From: Pelomyxa schiedti
Lineage: Eukaryota; Protista; Evosea
Length of the DNA stretch: 49,670 nt
Direction of reading: 5' to 3'
NCBI GenBank assembly: GCA_020536535.1
Contig: JAHLWZ010000088.1
Location: 1-49,670, forward strand
The notes beneath the pieces are model-generated. The model was not told the DNA's origin, searched no databases, and saw only the letters and a program-made list of their open reading frames with translations. Positions 36,901 to 49,228 of this stretch are shown here, one piece after another. The position numbers and the translations under genes were made by a program. Within the stretch, counting starts at the first letter, position 1. Each line of letters begins with the position of its first letter.

Positions 36901-38100
36901 CTTAGCAAACCGCAAACATGGTGCTTGTGATGCAGATATAAGCTTATTCTCTCAATTTGTACTGCTGAAGAAAATCAAAAAGTCCATTGACTCAAACCCG
37001 AACTGTTCCCTTAATGATGTCATTTCGGCACTATGTGAAATACAAAAGTTCCTTCTTGCCGATGATAGCAGAATATTTGGTCAAATTGCCGTGCCACCAG
37101 AAGAACATGCATCCGTGTTGGGGCAGTTTATTTCCTGCTGGAAACCTGAAATTAAAAGTCGCACACGGAAACGAAAACGACCTTCGCACCCAAACTTCAT
37201 GTTACCCTATTGTCACCCAGCCACGCAGTCTTTACCCCCCTTTTCGCTGCTCATTCCCATAAAAGGAGTTGACACTTCTTTCTTCAGGTACTCGATTCAC
37301 AATTACTCTCTTAATGCTGCTTAGCCAGTCCGTAAGCTGCTCTATAACAGTCCGGCACCCTGATTACTTTCCCGTCTGTCTCCTCAATGAAATACTTTCC
37401 CGTACAGAAGGACCTCTCTACTCAAAGGTAACTAAAAATTGTGCATCCACACAGAAAAATAAACTGTTCTGTCATTAGATTCGAGGAGCTGGATATGCTT
37501 ATGACGCCTCCATTTCTTTGCAGCTTACATCGCAGCAGTTAGTTTTTGTTGTTCAGGACTCGACTTCTCCCCACCAGGCAGTCCAAGAGTTTTATGAAGT
37601 TCTGAGGTGCATGAACTCAACTCCTGAGACGTACCTGTCAGAATTCGCTATTGAATCCGCAAGGTGCACTTCTAAGAACGGTGCCCAACTAACAGGATGA
37701 AAGGTCTGCACTACTCTACCAGTTCCACAGTACACAGTTTACAGCGCCAAGTCTCATAACAGCCTCCCTAAGAAGCCTTCTTAAGGGGTTCCCCTCTTTG
37801 GCAGAGGAAACCGCAAACTGGCAGGTTTGCCACTTCACAACTTTGGACAGTCCTTCCTTCCTCTACTTACCCTTACTGCAGTTGATGGATAAGGTGCACC
37901 AGTCAGACATATTGCGTGTATTCCACTTGTACTTCACACAGTTTTTGAGAAGTGAGCATAGAACCACAGTTGTGGTGACTGATCCCAGTGCCGTAGAGAA
38001 TTTACTCTCTGAATTTGGAGGATCAACAACAAACCCCACCAATTTCACTGTTCACAAGTATGAAACCGTTGCCTTACACAACAACATTTTTGGACTATAA
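33983..38100 (+). CDS. M16 (insulinase-like) zinc metallopeptidase, M16C / yeast YOL098C-like, multi-exon
   Basis: GEPHAVEHLVFMGS (HxxEH), TNAYTAEDHT, YLEHLLHP..TEIYHVD, GVVFCE, LNSGG..IRSLT..FHSKFYHPRN, RPYLVLFQELLF; stop at 38100. Confidence 0.85.
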
Positions 38101-38145
38101 TCGAACACAATAATTACACCATCTTTTTTTCTTTTCTTTCCCTAT

Positions 38146-41100
38146 CTACAATCCATTTATGATATTTTCTATCATAAGTCTTCGAGCTACTTGGAGTTTG
38201 CTAGCAAATTCCACGCTCGAGTAGCAGACACGTTCCCCGTTGATAGCTGAAAAATAGAACATAAGGATGGTTAAATGATTTGATAAAAAGGATTACCTTT
38301 ACAAAGGATGAAGTCCCGGAAATACTTCAAGGAATCTCCCTTGAAAATGATGGGATTCTGCAGCTCGGGATGAAAGGAGGGAACACCAGCCTTTGTGGCT
38401 ATTTCACATCTGCAAAGTTTTGGTTTAGGCTCTTAGAAACTTGACAAAATGTAAATGGGAACTCACTGGTATCCACCACTGTCGAGGCATCTAACAACAA
38501 TGAAAATGTCTGTGGAGGGGTGAAAAATCTTTGGAATGTTGGTGAAAGTTACAGTTAAATTGTGACAGCATGATTTCGGGTCTGAAAACAGGTGTACCTT
38601 CGTAAAACAGAATTACAACGATGTCATTTCCTATATGCCTGCATTTTTATTGTGTTATTATGTGATGGCTAGAATTAAAGTGAATGTACCGCTTGCGTTC
38701 TACTTGCTGAGGGTCGTATTCAGACCAGGGCAGAAGGGTAGAAACATGAAACATAAGTTTGAATCCCCTATATTCTGTATACACTGAGTGGGTACCAGTG
38801 GAATTGCCTAAAAAAGGTTAGAAAACTTAATTTAAAGAAGAGTACTTTTAACATCCAGCCCTGCAGCGAATCCTGTGAAGCCTTCGAGGGGAACTTGCGT
38901 ACCAAGGAGATTTAGGAACTGTGTGAACTGTGCACTTCCAACTTCTAATAGTCAGTTAATGGTTTTTTTTTTTTTAATCACTAAGGAAATTCGGTTCGTA
39001 CTGTTTGAGTAAAAGTGCTGATCTTGCGACTGGTGTGGTTGGCAATATATCACACCAATTTTTAGACACTTGGAAATCTAATCAGGGTGAGAAACGATGA
39101 AACTACGGACATATTGCCTGTGAATCGTAGAATTTTAGTAAATTTTTTGTCCAATTGCCGAATTTTGCAGAGGGTACTTCGTTGATTGAAATTGGGGATG
39201 TTGTTGGGGAAACAAGTTTGAGAATCTGTTTGATGGGGACAGAGCTACTTGTTGTGCGGGGAATCTCAATTACCCCCTTGTAGTCAGTCTAAAAGAGTTG
39301 GTTAGATGTTTTCTTTTTTTGGCGGGGGTTGTACAGCTTTAGTGCTTAAAAGGACACGCATAAATTCAAGTCGTGATGTCGGAATCACAGATACAAGGAA
39401 ACTTTGATCTGACTCGAACTTCCCAAAAAAAATACTGTGGCCTTTGTAGGGATAAGTATAACGCATAATCAAACATATTCTCACTTTGTCCCATAAAATG
39501 TTCGCGGTACCAGTTTTCCTTTGATGAGAAAAGTGACTAGGGGACACCAGAAAAGGGAAAAACATACAAAATAGAGAGGATCAGCAATATTGATTGTTCC
39601 TTCAGAAAGGTCGGCGATTCTCTTTGGTCCAATGTATTCTTGCACAATATAACCCTTGCCAGCTTCAATAAGGGGAGCTGGCCACAATTTAGAGGGAGGC
39701 ACTCACTAACTAGTGACTACCAAAGTATTCTGGAACAGTGTTGTTACTAGTATCTGCATCTAAAAGCTCTTTTTAACAATAGCTTTTAAAAGGAAAAAAG
39801 ATCCGTACTCTGGTCTTGGGAGATAGGAAACAGATCTAAACCTTCAAAATTTTAGACTATGGCAAAGGGGGGGCGGGGGAATCCATACAAATATTATCCC
39901 CAACAGTAGGTAGTATGCTTCCACTACGAGATCTTGCTCGGACAGGGAACGATGCATCTAGTGACAATTCAATTGTGGAGAGATAAAAACCTCTCAACCT
40001 GCACGCACTGGTACTTGTTTCGAAGAAGCAACTTTAAGACTCTTACAAAGTGAAGAAAGAGAATCTTGCAGGTCTTGCTTTCCAGACTTCATTGTTTGGA
40101 AGAAATCCAACCGGCAGGCATTTGCAACTAAAGAGTATTAAGCTAGCAATGATGATTGCCCACTACCTTTACGTAATAGTAAAAGATGGAAGCTGGGTTC
40201 TAAGTTTTCATCTATCAGTGGCATTTCAAAAATTGGAGGGAATTGTGGAGTCCCAGGTCTACAAATTACATTCAACCGGTATTTTAGTTTGGGAGACAGT
40301 GATGCATAAGATATATGGAAAATAACACCTGAAGCCAACTTAGTTACGTACGTAGAGTGAAAAAAAGATTTACAAGCATTGGGGTAAGTTGTAAAATCAG
40401 GTTGCTTGTTTGGAGAAAACACCACAAGCACTTTTTTGGTAGAATTTCCAATCTGGTAAATGTGAAAAAAGAAATCTCTTGGAGAGTATACTCAACATGA
40501 AAGTTAATTGGTGGTATCATAGTCCTTTCAAAAGGAGCAGTTTGAAACTCGGATGCCGTATCAGATAAAGTGGACCCAGCCAAAAATTGTAGAAAGTGAT
40601 GAAATCTCATTGAAGAACCAGTTCCTGCATATTTGATTGGAAAACAATGGATTTTCAAGAATACTTACCCTCTTCACCATCTAAAACAGAAGCCCACAGA
40701 GTTGATGGGAATAACAAATTTTCAAATTCAGCGATTTTAGCAGCCTGCTTTAGGTTACTCCTGCACCTCACAAAATTTAATGCCCTTGATAAAAGTTAAA
40801 TAAAATCTCATTGAACGTATTCCTTTGACCTTGTTGACGGATCCAACGCTTGGAAACTTCGGTGATTCGTCCTAGGAGGCAGTAGTAGTCTGCGAGACCC
40901 TTCTTTACTGAATAAAATCGACTTGACGGGTACTGAGTCACTACTATGTTCACTTATGCACAATAAGTATGGGCTGTCCCCATCTTCAGACTTAAATATA
41001 TGTTGAGCTGAATGGTTGTTTCTAAAAAGAACTCATAGGTATAAAACTTACATCCAGCTGGTACAAAGTAATCCCGATAATAGTGGAAATGAAGGTCTGG

Positions 41101-43790
41101 TATCCAAGCAAGAGGGGAGGGTGACGCAGACTGGAACTGGGGGTACTCAAGTTGTGTCAAATCCAAGGAAGACCAATAATCAATGCCGATATTGTTCCAG
41201 GTCAACACTTCAAGCATTTTTAGTTCCTCATGCATTGTAGAAAGTGTTGTAACACTGAGACAATTATGTTAGGGCACTTTCCACTTGCATTCTAGCTAGT
41301 ACCGTCTTGGCAGAGGTGGCATGGTTGGTGTTTCATCTGCTAAGGTGCACTTAGGTGGCGGAGTCCCCATAAGGTTTTGAATTTCGATAGCAACACCAGA
41401 GGAATGGGGTCTTTTCTCGGGGTCATCCTCCATGCATTTCCTTAAGACACTCAGAAATACAGGGAAATTAGACTGAACAACTTTAGAAGCCCCAAGTATG
41501 CCAAACTGAACGCCTTTTCAACTGTACCCAAGGAAGAAAGAAAATCTTAAACTTTGTTATTGGGTCAGAGCCTGGTGGTTGGCAACCTGACTCTAAGTCT
41601 TGGACCGGCCGCAATTTCGAGAACTCTTTCCAAGTTTGAATTTCCCATAACACTGCGTCCGTTTACTTGGAGTAAGTGATCTTGAAAATACTTACCAATC
41701 CCAAAGGCGAGTACATCGGATTGTAGTGAGATGCCAGACTCCGCTGGATTAAGTGATCGTGTCTAAAACAATTGGGTTACAAAAAAGGGGGGTGATCAAA
41801 GGACACTTTAATGATTGGTGAAATCTCAAAGCTGGCATCTGCGATTTTGGCACGCATCTTTGCTGTAACCTTATGATACGTTATATCGAGCAAAAAGCCT
41901 CTTTGTTACCAGAATATTTTCACTGGAATAGGGTCAAGTAAAGAAATGGTTTGAAGATATTTTACCTTTTCAGATTTCCATGGAGAAAAGTAAATGAGTG
42001 CAGAAACTAGATACTTTGAATATAGCTACCAGTTGGAAAGTACTATACCTCCAAACCACTTGCGATATCATATGCAAGCTGGAGTTTAGTGTTATTTTTT
42101 ACATCTAACGAGGAATCCTGCAACAAGCTTCTTAGACTAAGAAATGTAAGATACGAATTTTAAGTCCTTGAGAGCAAAAGAAACCTATGAGGCTCAAATG
42201 GTGTGATGAAGCCAATCGCATCAGGGTAAATACAAGTTCCAATAAGGGGCACAACGCAAGGATGTAAAAAATGACTAAACTCAGTGAACATAACTGGATC
42301 ATAGTGGTTTGTATCTTACGCTCTCATTCTTGCAAGCCCTTTTACCGCTCCAACTGATATTTCAGTCACAGGGAATTTCTTCAATATTATATCCCTGCTA
42401 TGCAGTACACCTCTGTGCACGTTTGCAAACTCCAACAAAAAGTAAACATACTTGTAAGTCATTTCTGAGCCGAGTTGATTGAGGGATTTTATGTCACATG
42501 GGAAAATTTGTTTGTATGCCTCTACTGATGGTGACTCATTTTGTTCCAGAATATGGCATTTTACAACTCGAGAATCAAGCCCTTTTGTTCATTCAGAAGT
42601 AGTGCAGCAAGTGAGATGTAGATACTAGTTGGATATTTTTTCCTTGCCCATTCACTAAAAGTGGTTGTTGTCCTCTGAATGAGCTCTTCGAGGTCATTGC
42701 CCTATAGTTTTTCTAAGAAGGAGTAAAATAGAGACAGTTACCTCTGCTGGGTAAATCTTCGCTCTCGTTGCAAGCATGCATTGCAATCTATACTAAATCT
42801 CCTTTAGGAAGATATAAAGATATTCCACACATACACGGGGGAGTAAGGTATTCAATCGAGATTCTGCTTCCTCTGGTGATATTTGGAGATAGCGCAAAGT
42901 GACACCCGTAGTTTTACTCAAGGTGTGAGTTATTACAGCAATACTTAGGGACTGTGATCCAAGAAGCCAATACTCTTTCCGAAGGTGCACTGGAGGCAAT
43001 AAAAGTATATGTGCAAAAGCCTCCACAAAGTCAGATGTGTCAATCCAGCGAAACCCCTCCTCTAGCATAGGCATACACACAGTCCTGGAACATTTACATA
43101 CGATACGGAATAGAGGAAGGATCGCTAACTTTTGAAAAAGTACAGTAAGATACGTGAAATCCATCATGGGGTTATCAAAGGGAAGCTCATGATGTACAAT
43201 TGAGTAGGAAAATTCCGATTCAAGTTTCAAAGTCTGATCTTGGTTGAAAAACCTTCAACGGTGTGGGTTTACCTGTTCCATCTTACTTTGGAGATTACAG
43301 AAAATATGGGTGCCAGAACAAAACTACAAGTTCTTCTTCAGAAGAGGCAGAAAATTATTTTCTCACCTGAATTGGGAAAACACAGTGTACTCTACAGCTA
43401 GTAGCTACCTTGATAAGGTACTTCATTTGATCCTCTGAAATACCTATATTCATGTAAGTGGAATTCTAGTCACTCACCTTGGAAACCTGACTCTTGGAGG
43501 ACTGGTGTGCAGAGGAGAATACTTGCACCAGCAAAGATTTGCTGGAGGTCTCCCGGGGCCAAGGGATTGTAGGGAACTACGGAGGTAGTTGAAGAAAAAT
43601 CACTCAACTTGGCTGCAGTAAATTCTTGAAGAGATTAAGAGATTCTTAGAAATCAACTCATACTAACCTACAAATTCTGGTGGCTCAAAAATTCGAAGGT
43701 GCACTCCTTTCTTTGCTAAGAATAGTACAACTCTCATCGCGTAGGGAGAGAGATGGGGATATTGCACAAGTATATATGAAGATGGAGGGA
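38146..43790 (-). CDS. NmrA-like domain / pseudokinase / degenerate RapGAP / RapGAP multi-exon protein (probably the C-terminal part of the oxidoreductase gene)
   Basis: NmrA-like: WIDTSDFVEAFAHILL..EYWLLGSQSLS..LSKTTGVTLRY..SPEEA, LIQRTTTTFSEWAR. Kinase fold: YKGVLH..LHPCVVPLIG..LAYDIASGLEFLH..HGNLKS..AKIADAS..SDVLAFG..CMEDDPEKRP. RapGAP: KIGVIYCQ..FLNLLG..GLD..FHVSTLLP..RKRHIGNDIV..SQFN; TAG at 38146-38148. Confidence 0.7.
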
Positions 43791-45958
43791 GGACTGACGG
43801 TTTCTGCTTACCTTTAGTTTGAGGAAGTTAAGAGGCTTTCTCACTTGTATTCTGTTGTCACTGAAACAAAAGCCATGATGAATTTGTTTTGGGAAGAGAC
43901 ATTTTAGTGTAGTGTCTTGCAGTTTGCGCATCTGTACAGCCTTCTCACCAACAGCAACAACAGAATAATTTGTAATGGCAATGCCATTTTGAGTTCCTAA
44001 TCCAATAACAAGAGGTGGGATATCTCTTCATTTTTTTATGAGGTAAACTAAGGGAAAAGAAGAGGTGCATACTTTTTACCAATAATACAGGTTTTTAATG
44101 TCTGTCCTCGGAGTGACCGCTTTATATTCACTATTACTGACTATGTACTAACTCAGTGCTCATAGAAATATTGTAACCCTCCCCACAAGTGTGATGGACT
44201 CAAACCTGTGCCTGTATCATAGCAACTGAAGCCAGTTTTTCAGTGTTACTAGAAATTGCATCCCCACAAGCAAACACTTTATTGAAGCCCTGCACTTGCA
44301 GTTTATCATTGACCTACACCCCATCTCAAATTAGAACCCAATGAAAACAAAGCAAAAAATACCCGGATGTACCCTTCATCGTCCAAAACACCCTCATGAG
44401 CCTTGAAAAATTGGGTGTTTGGCACAACGCTTCTGCAGTCATAGCATCTAGTGCACTTTTTTTTTTTGACGAGAGGTCAACAAGTTGTAAGAGTTTCGAG
44501 TAAAAAGCGCAGATCAGCAAAGAGAACTATGAAAACACACTTTGAAGACTTGACCAGACTCGCAGGTGACAATAAACCCACATTGAGGCTCCAGTTGATA
44601 AACAATGCTCGTCACGATGACGGAACAGAGCAACTGCACATTTTTGGATACCATAAATTTCGTGATGTATGTTTGCACCTACGAAACATGAGATGAGTAC
44701 TTTGGGTAAAGGGTTGGGAAGCCGTTACCTCTGGGGGGAGTTGATGAGCTATTGTCTTCCTTTTCTCTATGATGGTGACTTGCAATTTGGGGAAGCATTC
44801 AGCTATCCATGCAGCCATTTCGAGACCTGTCACCCCTGCCATAATTATCCTTGGGTTAGAGCAGATGTTGGTATTTAGCTTCCGAACCTCCTCCAGCGAT
44901 AATAACTGACTCCGAACAAGCCAGTTCTTCTACTTCATTCTTGATTGCATTTATTCGCGTGTGGATTGATGGAGGAGGACACTTAAATAGCGGACAGTAT
45001 ACTCCAGTGCACACAACTAGATAGTCGTAGGGGAGAAGGCCTACACTTCTTTCTTGTTCAATATATACACCCGTTTTTTGAATTGATGTGACCTGGAAAG
45101 AATCAAGTTAGATAGTTCTACAACTATTTAAAGTGACAACCTTCCCCATTATAATTTGGCCATTAGTGATTGTTCTGCTATGCGGAAGATGAAGTGTTTC
45201 CACTTCATTCCCGTAAGAAGGAAGTAAGTCAGAAACTCCAAGAAAATAGCAAGCGGAGAGGTACATGGAGGAGCCGAGGAACATCCGCAAAGATGAGGTG
45301 GCACCGCGGCAGTAGCCTCCAAGTATTCCTTTATATCTATCAAGAATACCTTGTACTTCTTTGGCTTCTGGTCCAATGCAGCAGCCACAGTTAACCCAGC
45401 AACACCCCCTCCAATAACAACCACTCTAGCTGGATGTGGTGTATCTGATACACCAGAAACAGCAGAGGACGATGAGGCTGAAGACCTGAGGAAGTTTCTA
45501 AAAATGGGCTTTGAAGTCCCACCTGAGTTTTCAGAGGGTGTTGGGAGGGTTGGAAGTGATTTTCGGGCAATGGAGGGTGCTTGAGACGACGAGGATAGCA
45601 ACTGAACCTGAGTGGTAGAGTTTGTCATTGTGGGAGGGCAGACTGAGGGGCAGGAAACGCAGAGGGGCCCTCGGCCTCGTGCGGGCTCTGGGAGGCTGAG
45701 AACCGGCATTGTGGGATGCAGTAGAGGAGATTGTGGTTGAGTTGAGTTGGAGGGGAAGTTTGGCGATGTTGCTGGGCTCGTGCTGAGGGAATGAGGGGTA
45801 GACAGAGGTGGTGCCATTGTGGGAGAAGGATGATCATGTGCGCGGTGAGTGTGTTCTGGTGTTGCAGCCATTGGAGTAAGGTGTTCGTTATGGCGCAACA
45901 AGCGTTCAGTGTTTTTTTCCCTGTGTCCGCTTTGGTAAAAGCTCCTGTTGTTTCTCAA
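43734..45958 (-). CDS. FAD-dependent pyridine nucleotide-disulfide oxidoreductase, AIFM2/FSP1-like, with Ser/Pro-rich N-terminal extension
   Basis: RVVVIGGGVAGLTVA (FAD GxGxxG), GVTGLEMAAWIA (NAD site), VNDKLQVQGFNKVFACGD, IGLGTQNG. 5' end uncertain and may extend toward 46250; 3' end may splice into the NmrA exons. Confidence 0.8.
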
Positions 45959-46381: not shown

Positions 46382-46481
46382 NNNNNNNNNNNNNNNNNNN
46401 NNNNNNNNNNNNNNNNNNNNNNNNNNNNNNNNNNNNNNNNNNNNNNNNNNNNNNNNNNNNNNNNNNNNNNNNNNNNNNNNN
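46382..46481. other. Assembly gap (100 N, placeholder length)
   Basis: Run of exactly 100 N. Confidence 1.
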
Positions 46482-47072: not shown

Positions 47073-49228
47073 CTAACTTCGATATCCCGTAGTGGTTGTG
47101 GTCTGGGTGACGTCAGATTGACACGGCGGTTCCGTCGCCAATCCGTTTTGCCCCTGGTGAATGTTATCACATGGTTGAGCCACGTTATCAAAGAAGAAGC
47201 ACTGGTACTCTCCGAAAGTGGAGCTCACAACGAGGAGCTGGTTGGAGGCGGGCAGCCACGACGTCAGTAAGATGCGCTCTGGAGTGAGCGGTGTCGGGAG
47301 CGTGTTGCGGTAGCTTCCGTCGTACTCGCCCGTGGCAGTGTCAAACACGCCGTCGATTTCAGTGGCATGCCTGCCAAAGTAGAACCTCCCCCACACCACG
47401 AACGCGAACATGGTCTGCTTATTGGCACGCGGGACCACCCACGTCTGCCGCAGTGCCAGTGTGTCAGGGTCCACGAGGCTGATGTGTATGTTGTCCTCGG
47501 TCGGCGGTGAGTACAGTAGCCACAGCACACCGCCGGCGTCCGCAAAACAGCCTATGTAGGTGTGTTCGCCCCAGCTCCATGGTGATTGGCTGTTGCTCCC
47601 GGCATTTGACAGGTCGGCTGATGCGACCACGGCTCCATCAGATACGTCCGCCTTGATTATTGTGGCGGTGCCGCGCTGGTTGCAGTAGAAGTGCCCGTTT
47701 AGTACTGCCTGGTAAGTGCCGGCCGGTGGTCCACCCAGCATTTCGTAGTGGAAATACCTTGGGTCGATATTCTCCCTGAAGTTTGCTACGTTCTCGAACT
47801 CTGAAAGGGATTCGCTGCCCCAATCGGAGTTCCAGTACACTTTGCCTGTGGTCTGATCAACAAACGCACGTGCTCCCTTACGTTTGACTGACGGCTCCAT
47901 TGATCTGTCGAGCTCTTTGAGGGTCAACCTCGTTGCAGTGTTAGGAAATCCAAGCTGTGCGAAGCAATGAAGCCGTCCCAATGAAGATGTTGCAGCTGAA
48001 TCACACTCAAATCTCACCTTGTTTGGGTTAGTTGTTTGGGTTTTGTAGATATGTGGATGCATACATCAAAATTCGGGGGTGTGACAACATCTGCACAGAG
48101 CTTCTCAATTTGACTTGTGAGTGCCTGATTCACTGAGATAACCTGGAGATCAGACAGTCTCGTCATTGCCTGCTGCGCGTAAGCTTGTGCCTCAGGTGCG
48201 ACTTTCAACTTCTCGTCACATCCATTAATGTGGTCTTGAAAAATCTTGATAGTGTCAGCACTGTGGGATTGGTATGGCTTGCCTTTTTTGCGGATTCCGT
48301 GTGTGCTTTAAGTTGATAGATTAACTGAGCCTCTCTGGCATTCACCAGAGAAATAATATTGGCGAATTCGGAGTGTATCTCAGACTCCACTTTCTCTGAA
48401 ACTGCTTGGGCGTTTTTACACCCCTCCTTTGCTGTTGTTTAGAACAACAAGGAAAAGGGCTGGGAACGCACGATTGCAGCCAATCTTGAAGTTGATATTT
48501 TTTCCAAATTAGGCACAACATATGAGACACTTGTCAGTTTTGCAGTAGAGCTTTAATTCCTCCAGTGGGTGCTTGGGGCAAAATACCGGCTTGTGCACTA
48601 TGGGGATGGTCGTCGCCTTCGTTTTGAGTTCCTCCACGGTCACAACCTTTCAGAGTTGGATTTCCTTTTGGGGTGAGAAAGTTGAACGCACCTTGTGAGA
48701 AGATGTCCTCTTTGCCCGCAAGTGGTGAGCCTTGTCATCTGGGCACAGGAACACACCACAGGTGGTGCAAGTCCACTCTGCATTGTGGGAGCCACACTCG
48801 GAGCACTCTGGAGGTGGTGGCGTGGTCGTGGCCGGCGACAGTGGGACCAAATCCAGCAGGGAACTCTTCCACAGGTCAACTGGGAATCCGTTGCACCCTC
48901 CGGTTGGAATTGTTGCCTGTGTTGTGTGATTAATTCCGTTCTTACTAGTTGTTGGTAAATGACGCGTTCGCTCACACCAACGAATGGCACACAGGGCACT
49001 CCACGTAAGAGGGTGTCGTCGTGGACGTGGCGGAATTGGGGGAGGGGCACGTGCTCGCGTGCTTGACGATGCACTCGAGGCACATCGTGTGAAGGCACGG
49101 CAGCAGCCTGTCCGAGTGATTCAAGCAGTCAAAGAAATGAAAAGGCATCAAATTGGGAACCGTGGGTCACGGCGGAAACAGGAGCAACAAGGGCATGTTA
49201 TTTGTGCGACCACTTGGCTCTTCTCCAT
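47073..49228 (-). pseudogene. TRIM-like RING/B-box/olfactomedin paralog (copy B) with B-box2 deletion and premature stop; probable pseudogene or truncated allele
   Basis: ATG 49228; RING and B-box1 intact; in-frame TAA at 48509-48511 after ICCA, where ~155 bp present in copy A (14714-14867) are missing; OLF exon 47073..48062 still open. Confidence 0.6.

Follow-up and report, generated by a model that had tools for sequence, protein, structure and literature searches.

Domain architecture of a predicted Rap GTPase-activating protein of Pelomyxa schiedti: a single gene or a row of neighbours?

Does a 7.7 kb tract of short exons in the amoeba Pelomyxa schiedti form a single gene, in which an oxidoreductase has been joined to a GTPase-activating protein (GAP), or have neighbouring genes been strung together by gene prediction? 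The tract lies on the minus strand of contig JAHLWZ010000088.1 (assembly GCA_020536535.1), positions 1 to 49,670 of which were analysed; this whole stretch of 49,670 nt is referred to below as the window. An original prediction, made from the sequence of the window, had read from the tract one polypeptide with an FSP1/AIFM2-like oxidoreductase, an NmrA domain, a pseudokinase and two RapGAP domains. It had also proposed that this polypeptide couples NAD(P)H or oxygen status to small-GTPase signalling, an idea considered attractive if the host were an anaerobic amoeba, which P. schiedti indeed is.

We found that the deposited protein KAH3767040.1 (P0001, 1832 aa) maps exactly, codon by codon, to positions 45871-38149 of the minus strand. 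The coding region (38146..45871) runs from an ATG at 45871 to a last codon at 38149, followed by a TAG stop at 38148-38146, and comprises 49 exons. The protein, which carries the name “GTPase activating protein [Pelomyxa schiedti]”, has no record other than that on the genome contig and is the sole member of its own 90% cluster. The most economical reading, and the most likely one, is that of one gene. On the basis of the gene prediction, the spacing of the domains and the logic of the start codons, we consider it somewhat probable that a single P. schiedti gene encodes a Rap-family GTPase-activating protein of 1832 residues, while the fusion of its FSP1-like, NmrA-like and pseudokinase domains is well supported.

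Domains of the predicted protein

Pfam was run on the spliced protein; a run on single exons missed the kinase entirely. Together with alignments of the spliced protein, this analysis placed the domains in the order that had originally been read from the minus strand, on which all features of the gene described below are located.

The chain opens with an N-terminal extension of ~148 aa, rich in Ser and Pro (45428..45871), which contains no recognisable domain and gave no Pfam match before aa 133. It is followed by an FSP1/AIFM2-like FAD/NAD(P)H oxidoreductase domain (aa ~149-515; 43845..45427), encoded by 9 exons, in which Pfam located Pyr_redox_2 at aa 149-439 with 118 bits. The best solved relative of this domain is FSP1/AIFM2, with a full-length match (97 bits, E 1e-26; 9-360 to 6-351, 352 residues), and the next family, the CoA-disulfide reductases, reached only E 1e-8. 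The alignment with FSP1/AIFM2 (PDB 9IFT, 8YO8, 7XPI) extends from end to end over aa 148-500, and both GGGxxG motifs (GGGVAG and GGGVTG), the Glu of LEMAA after the second motif and the Asp of CGD are conserved. Unlike FSP1/AIFM2, the Pelomyxa domain is internal and fused to signalling domains. Animal FSP1 is targeted to membranes by N-terminal myristoylation; such an anchor is impossible at the position of the Pelomyxa domain, because this begins only at aa 149, after the extension. The nearest database proteins are stand-alone proteins of a plant and a chytrid, with ~26-28% identity.

Residues 524-817 (42626..43803) appear to adopt an NmrA-like fold, that of an atypical short-chain dehydrogenase/reductase (SDR). 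Pfam NmrA (PF05368) scored 15.9 bits on one exon, which is below its cut-off, and the spliced region yielded no match to it at E 0.01. When an exon of this region (the longest stop-free stretch) was compared with 1.8 billion representative proteins, only four weak matches (phmmer E 1e-6) were retrieved besides KAH3767040.1 itself; all four are genuine NmrA-family proteins, which themselves score 32-153 bits. Residues 520-820 are co-linear with the NmrA-family matches along the whole fold. An AlphaFold2 model of the domain reached a pLDDT of 72, and its top Foldseek matches were triphenylmethane reductase, SimC7, HSCARG and NmrA (TM ~0.6); the input alignment consisted of 7 rows, all of the NmrA family, hence neither the model nor these matches are independent evidence.

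NmrA and HSCARG (NMRAL1) are non-enzymatic, redox-sensing regulators which keep a glycine-rich loop and bind NAD(P). The Pelomyxa domain resembles them in its probable overall fold and its co-linear alignment, but its Pfam score is sub-threshold and QYPHLSP takes the place of the GxxGxxG loop, with ILVQYPHLSPYA standing opposite ILV-LGPTGNVGSA and no glycine kept. Because of this replacement, canonical binding of NAD(P) by the domain is unlikely. As a putative fold, the NmrA domain of the original prediction agrees with the family matches and the alignment, while the role in NAD(P) and redox sensing ascribed to it is weakened.

One of the four matches, and the nearest relative among eukaryotes, belongs to another amoebozoan, Pellita catalonica (P0004, EukProt; 463 aa); in this protein a PH domain accompanies the NmrA-like one. 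This protein suggests that the joining of NmrA-like folds to signalling domains may be recurrent in Amoebozoa.

Residues 818-1101 (41303..42581) correspond to a kinase-like domain of the TKL type, recognised by Pfam and by alignment to CTR1, ILK and TNNI3K. Two Pfam families scored above the gathering score, PK_Tyr_Ser-Thr (PF07714; aa 888-1070) with 82 bits and PF00069 with 52 bits. The TKL kinases and pseudokinases CTR1, TNNI3K and ILK are the best solved relatives (48-56 bits), and the Lys of VAIK and the Asn of KxxN are kept in the Pelomyxa domain. In contrast to these relatives, it has HGNLKSEN for HRDLKxxN, DAS for DFG, a degenerate glycine loop (GSEMTY) and a short activation segment, and it is flanked by an SDR fold on one side and a RapGAP on the other. 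Judged by these motifs, among which the catalytic Asp is missing, the domain is a pseudokinase, as had been proposed.

The C-terminal module, designated GAP2 (aa 1481-1832; 38149..39677), is of the canonical Rap1GAP-like type, with a dimerisation and a catalytic part. Rap_GAP (PF02145) was found at aa 1644-1821 with 210 bits (cut-off 27), covering profile positions 2-184 of 185, and a weak Rap-GAP_dimer match at aa 1520-1589 with 19-21 bits, below the cut-off of 27. The match to the Rap1GAP structure 1SRQ (178 bits) spans chain residues 15-323, that is, the whole crystallised construct including the dimerisation domain, and the Asn-thumb helix ERKRHIGNDIV stands opposite QRKRHIGNDIV of 1SRQ. 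GAP2 also matches RalGAP alpha-2 and tuberin. By these alignments it is a complete Rap1GAP-type unit with a catalytic Asn thumb, which should switch off a Rap-like GTPase. Human RAP1GAP (PDB 1SRQ, 3BRW) aligns with the C-terminal 310 residues and shares the conserved RKRHIGND helix; the Pelomyxa protein differs from it in having ~1500 extra N-terminal residues (oxidoreductase, NmrA-like, pseudokinase and degenerate RapGAP) and no GoLoco or animal-type accessory region.

The preceding module, GAP1 (aa 1102-1433; 39999..41254), is highly divergent. Pfam Rap_GAP gave 20.6-20.9 bits, below the cut-off of 27, and at profile positions 80-171 only. When the module was compared by hhalign with ten aligned RapGAP modules, a probability of 92% (E 5e-7, 274 columns) was returned, over a span which takes in the YYRDYF start, the FHHFLQFL motif, NFHIGNS and, towards the C-terminus, the Y..V....P.F.P and LL.K..NA motifs. 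In this alignment NFHIGNS stands opposite RKRHIGND, with HIGN kept at the Asn-thumb position, and YRLNVICRPGTPQFPP stands opposite the Y.v..k.vP.F.P motif. A co-linear BLASTP match between GAP1 and GAP2 was also observed. The GGLD and FHVS motifs are absent from GAP1, a search of the PDB with its sequence found no match, and a hidden Markov model of RapGAP modules built in this study scored only 8 bits, on the C-terminal motif; an AlphaFold2 model made without an alignment was unusable (mean pLDDT 35). On the strength of the alignments we regard GAP1 as a genuine but degenerate second RapGAP module in which the Asn is kept, and the two RapGAP domains originally read from the locus are thereby both recovered. 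RalGAP alpha/beta and TSC2 offer a parallel, as there too a catalytic Asn-thumb RapGAP domain is paired with a second RapGAP-like partner; the difference is that the Pelomyxa protein would carry both modules in one chain.

Searches of billions of proteins revealed no second protein combining FSP1-like, NmrA-like and pseudokinase domains with two RapGAP modules, and the long relatives of KAH3767040.1 share only its C-terminal RapGAP module (12-20% coverage). In the literature, we found no paper that links a RapGAP with NmrA, describes a RapGAP-pseudokinase fusion or discusses the RapGAPs of Archamoebae, and KAH3767040.1 is not mentioned in the P. schiedti genome paper (PMC8887013). The earlier remark that no described protein of this architecture was known agrees with the outcome of these searches of databases and literature. 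The protein itself had already been deposited, under a generic name only, and its architecture is that of a singleton RapGAP resting on gene prediction.

One gene or several

The case for one gene begins with the spacing of its parts. The largest non-coding interval within the 7.7 kb is 85 nt, in line with the original remark that nothing resembling an intergenic spacer separates the domains, while the promoter-bearing spacers between annotated neighbours on the contig measure 512, 655 and 1202 nt. The ends of the conserved FSP1-like and NmrA-like domains are separated by ~12 aa and a GT-AG intron of 41 nt (intron 9; 43804..43844), those of the NmrA-like and kinase domains by ~30 aa and a GT-AG intron of 44 nt (intron 17; 42582..42625), and those of the kinase and GAP1 by ~40 aa and a GT-AG intron of 48 nt (intron 28; 41255..41302), retention of which would end the open reading frame at a TAG at 41301-41299. 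Introns 17 and 28 of the deposited model are exactly the phase-compatible introns that had been singled out beforehand as joining these domains. Homology to FSP1, CTR1 and Rap1GAP continues unbroken across many of the predicted splice junctions, which validates the introns concerned.

Several observations nevertheless weigh against a single gene, and they have to be considered together with the alternatives to it. Among the proteins searched, of 253-805, 375-1190 and 1008-3206 aa, no transcript-derived fragment or relative extends across any of the junctions, and the protein databases hold no orthologue or paralogue with the same architecture, for which reason conservation cannot support the fusion. 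The assembly, moreover, derives from amplified DNA of single cells and was scaffolded with RNA-seq pairs (PMC8887013), and a run of 100 N (46382-46481) is present 510 nt before the start codon. Multiple-displacement amplification or scaffolding might thus have joined unrelated loci into an architecture which is absent from the cell; however, no N run or break in composition occurs within the gene, and every junction is a regular GT-AG intron of 41-48 nt with the phase preserved, an outcome that a random join would rarely produce four times. We consider such a chimera extremely improbable. It is also very unlikely that the predictor wrongly chained three to five adjacent independent genes (for an oxidoreductase, an NmrA-like protein, a kinase and two GAPs). 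Predictors can link neighbours in compact genomes, and convergent 3' ends on this contig are only 46-133 nt apart, but single introns and linkers of 12-40 aa leave no room for untranslated regions or promoters at the junctions. An in-frame stop precedes the kinase N-lobe exon by 10 nt, and this exon offers no ATG ahead of its glycine loop; the sole ATG open to the NmrA-like domain lies inside helix A, so that a gene starting there would be deprived of both strand 1 and the loop. GAP1 does have in-frame ATGs of its own, 64 nt after an alternative stop, so that a separate GAP1 gene may exist in principle, but no promoter space is left for it.

The weakest join in the gene model is that between GAP1 and GAP2. 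The 321-nt gap between them is bridged by three mini-exons of 69, 33 and 39 nt (39721..39957), the least secure part of the deposited model. An in-frame bridge of this gap was obtained in 286 of 300 dinucleotide shuffles (95%), which deprives the mini-exons of evidential value; for the three single-intron junctions, the shuffle test of the junction introns is uninformative by construction. If intron 35 is left unspliced, GAP1 ends at a TGA at 39997-39995, and an ATG at 39957, from which the GAP2 exon can be reached via short introns, is a structurally possible start for GAP2. Since Rap1GAP-like proteins usually start near the dimerisation domain, it might be supposed that the FSP1-like, NmrA-like and pseudokinase domains, perhaps with GAP1, form one gene, and that GAP2 (39677-38149), starting near 39957, belongs to a second gene in tandem with it. 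This would leave only ~38 nt from stop to start, as against at least 512 nt in the promoter-bearing spacers on the contig; the first GAP2 exon itself has no in-frame ATG, and in the public model, a product of Augustus, PASA and EVM, the tract stays a single gene (PMC8887013). A separate GAP2 gene is, in our opinion, a possibility to be reckoned with, albeit an unlikely one. The proposal of one polypeptide accordingly stands in so far as a single gene model has been deposited; it rests on prediction, spacing and start codons, and the link from GAP1 to GAP2 is tentative.

Introns and surroundings of the gene

The gene contains 48 introns of 38-85 nt (median 44), of which, as mapped, 47 have GT-AG borders and one GC-AG. 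The latter (39078-39117, minus strand; 40 nt, GCAATA...GATTAG) lies at a point where the deposited model can be mapped only with such a border. GC-AG introns account for 1.59% in the P. schiedti genome paper (PMC8887013). Three other introns of the minus strand, 43085-43129 (45 nt), 42413-42451 (39 nt) and 40329-40373 (45 nt), are stop-free and have lengths divisible by three. As the reading frame survives their retention, the exact protein sequence is ambiguous in three places: the NmrA-like region, the N-lobe of the kinase and GAP1.

A ciliate-type reassignment of stop codons was considered because the kinase region seemed to contain a TAA in frame. This idea was abandoned, as the lengths of stop-free stretches are not biased toward any stop codon, and choice of the correct acceptor puts the TAA inside an ordinary intron of 45 nt (42319-42275). 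A dynamic-programming gene model built in the course of the analysis proved too greedy and contained wrong frames, and was replaced by the deposited one. The annotation of P. schiedti was produced with Augustus and refined with PASA and EVM on the basis of Smart-seq2 transcriptomes (PMC8887013). No sign of pseudogenisation of the KAH3767040.1 gene was seen.

The window as a whole is intron-dense eukaryotic sequence of ~42% G+C, in which the 100-N run upstream of the gene is the only one; Rfam and tRNA scans of the window were both empty. On the downstream side, a convergent plus-strand neighbour (annotated as 1063 aa, with Peptidase_M16_C) ends only 46 nt from the stop of KAH3767040.1 (window 38100-38149), which implies that the 3' untranslated regions of the two genes either overlap or are extremely short. 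On the upstream side, the N run separates the gene from a neighbour on the same strand (47073-48166, minus), which encodes 348 aa with an olfactomedin domain (OLF, PF02191), a domain unusual outside animals. If the join at the N run was made by RNA-seq-pair scaffolding (PMC8887013), the gap may be crossed by a transcript; the upstream gene would then have a long 3' untranslated region, or KAH3767040.1 would have further 5' exons that are missing from the annotation.

A possible link between redox state and Rap signalling

Rap signalling controls the cytoskeleton and adhesion. Rap1GAP dimerises via its N-terminal domain, and in RalGAP a catalytic subunit is paired with a degenerate RapGAP-like beta subunit. 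Because Rap1GAP homodimers and the RalGAP alpha/beta pair provide precedents, we propose that GAP1 and GAP2 would pair within one chain, via their dimerisation domains, as a pseudo-dimer of an active and a degenerate module. The pseudokinase and NmrA-like domains would serve as non-catalytic scaffolds. The FSP1-like domain, which judging by its sequence may be a working NAD(P)H-dependent flavoenzyme, would either place a quinone or membrane reductase at the site of Rap signalling or pass its cofactor state to the GAP. P. schiedti possesses RquA and quinone-linked enzymes, and makes rhodoquinone (PMC8887013).

That NAD(P)H or oxygen status is coupled to GAP activity, as originally suggested, can only be inferred, and redox control of the GAP is speculation. 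One form that it might take is a flavin-gated Rap switch, in which the degenerate NmrA-like domain and the pseudokinase would transmit to the RapGAP pseudo-dimer whether the FSP1-like domain is reduced or occupied by NAD(P)H, so that the adhesion and motility governed by Rap would respond directly to the status of quinone, oxygen or NAD(P)H in this anaerobic amoeba. We consider this switch improbable; if it were true, it would constitute the first direct link of an FSP1-type oxidoreductase to the regulation of small GTPases.

To conclude, if the gene model is a merge, the finding shrinks to ordinary neighbouring genes. If the fusion is real, KAH3767040.1 would present the first case in which an FSP1-family enzyme forms part of a signalling protein, and no earlier RapGAP would have combined two GAP modules in a single chain. 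It would then also offer a testable candidate for the way in which an oxygen-sensitive anaerobe ties its metabolic redox state to Rap signalling.

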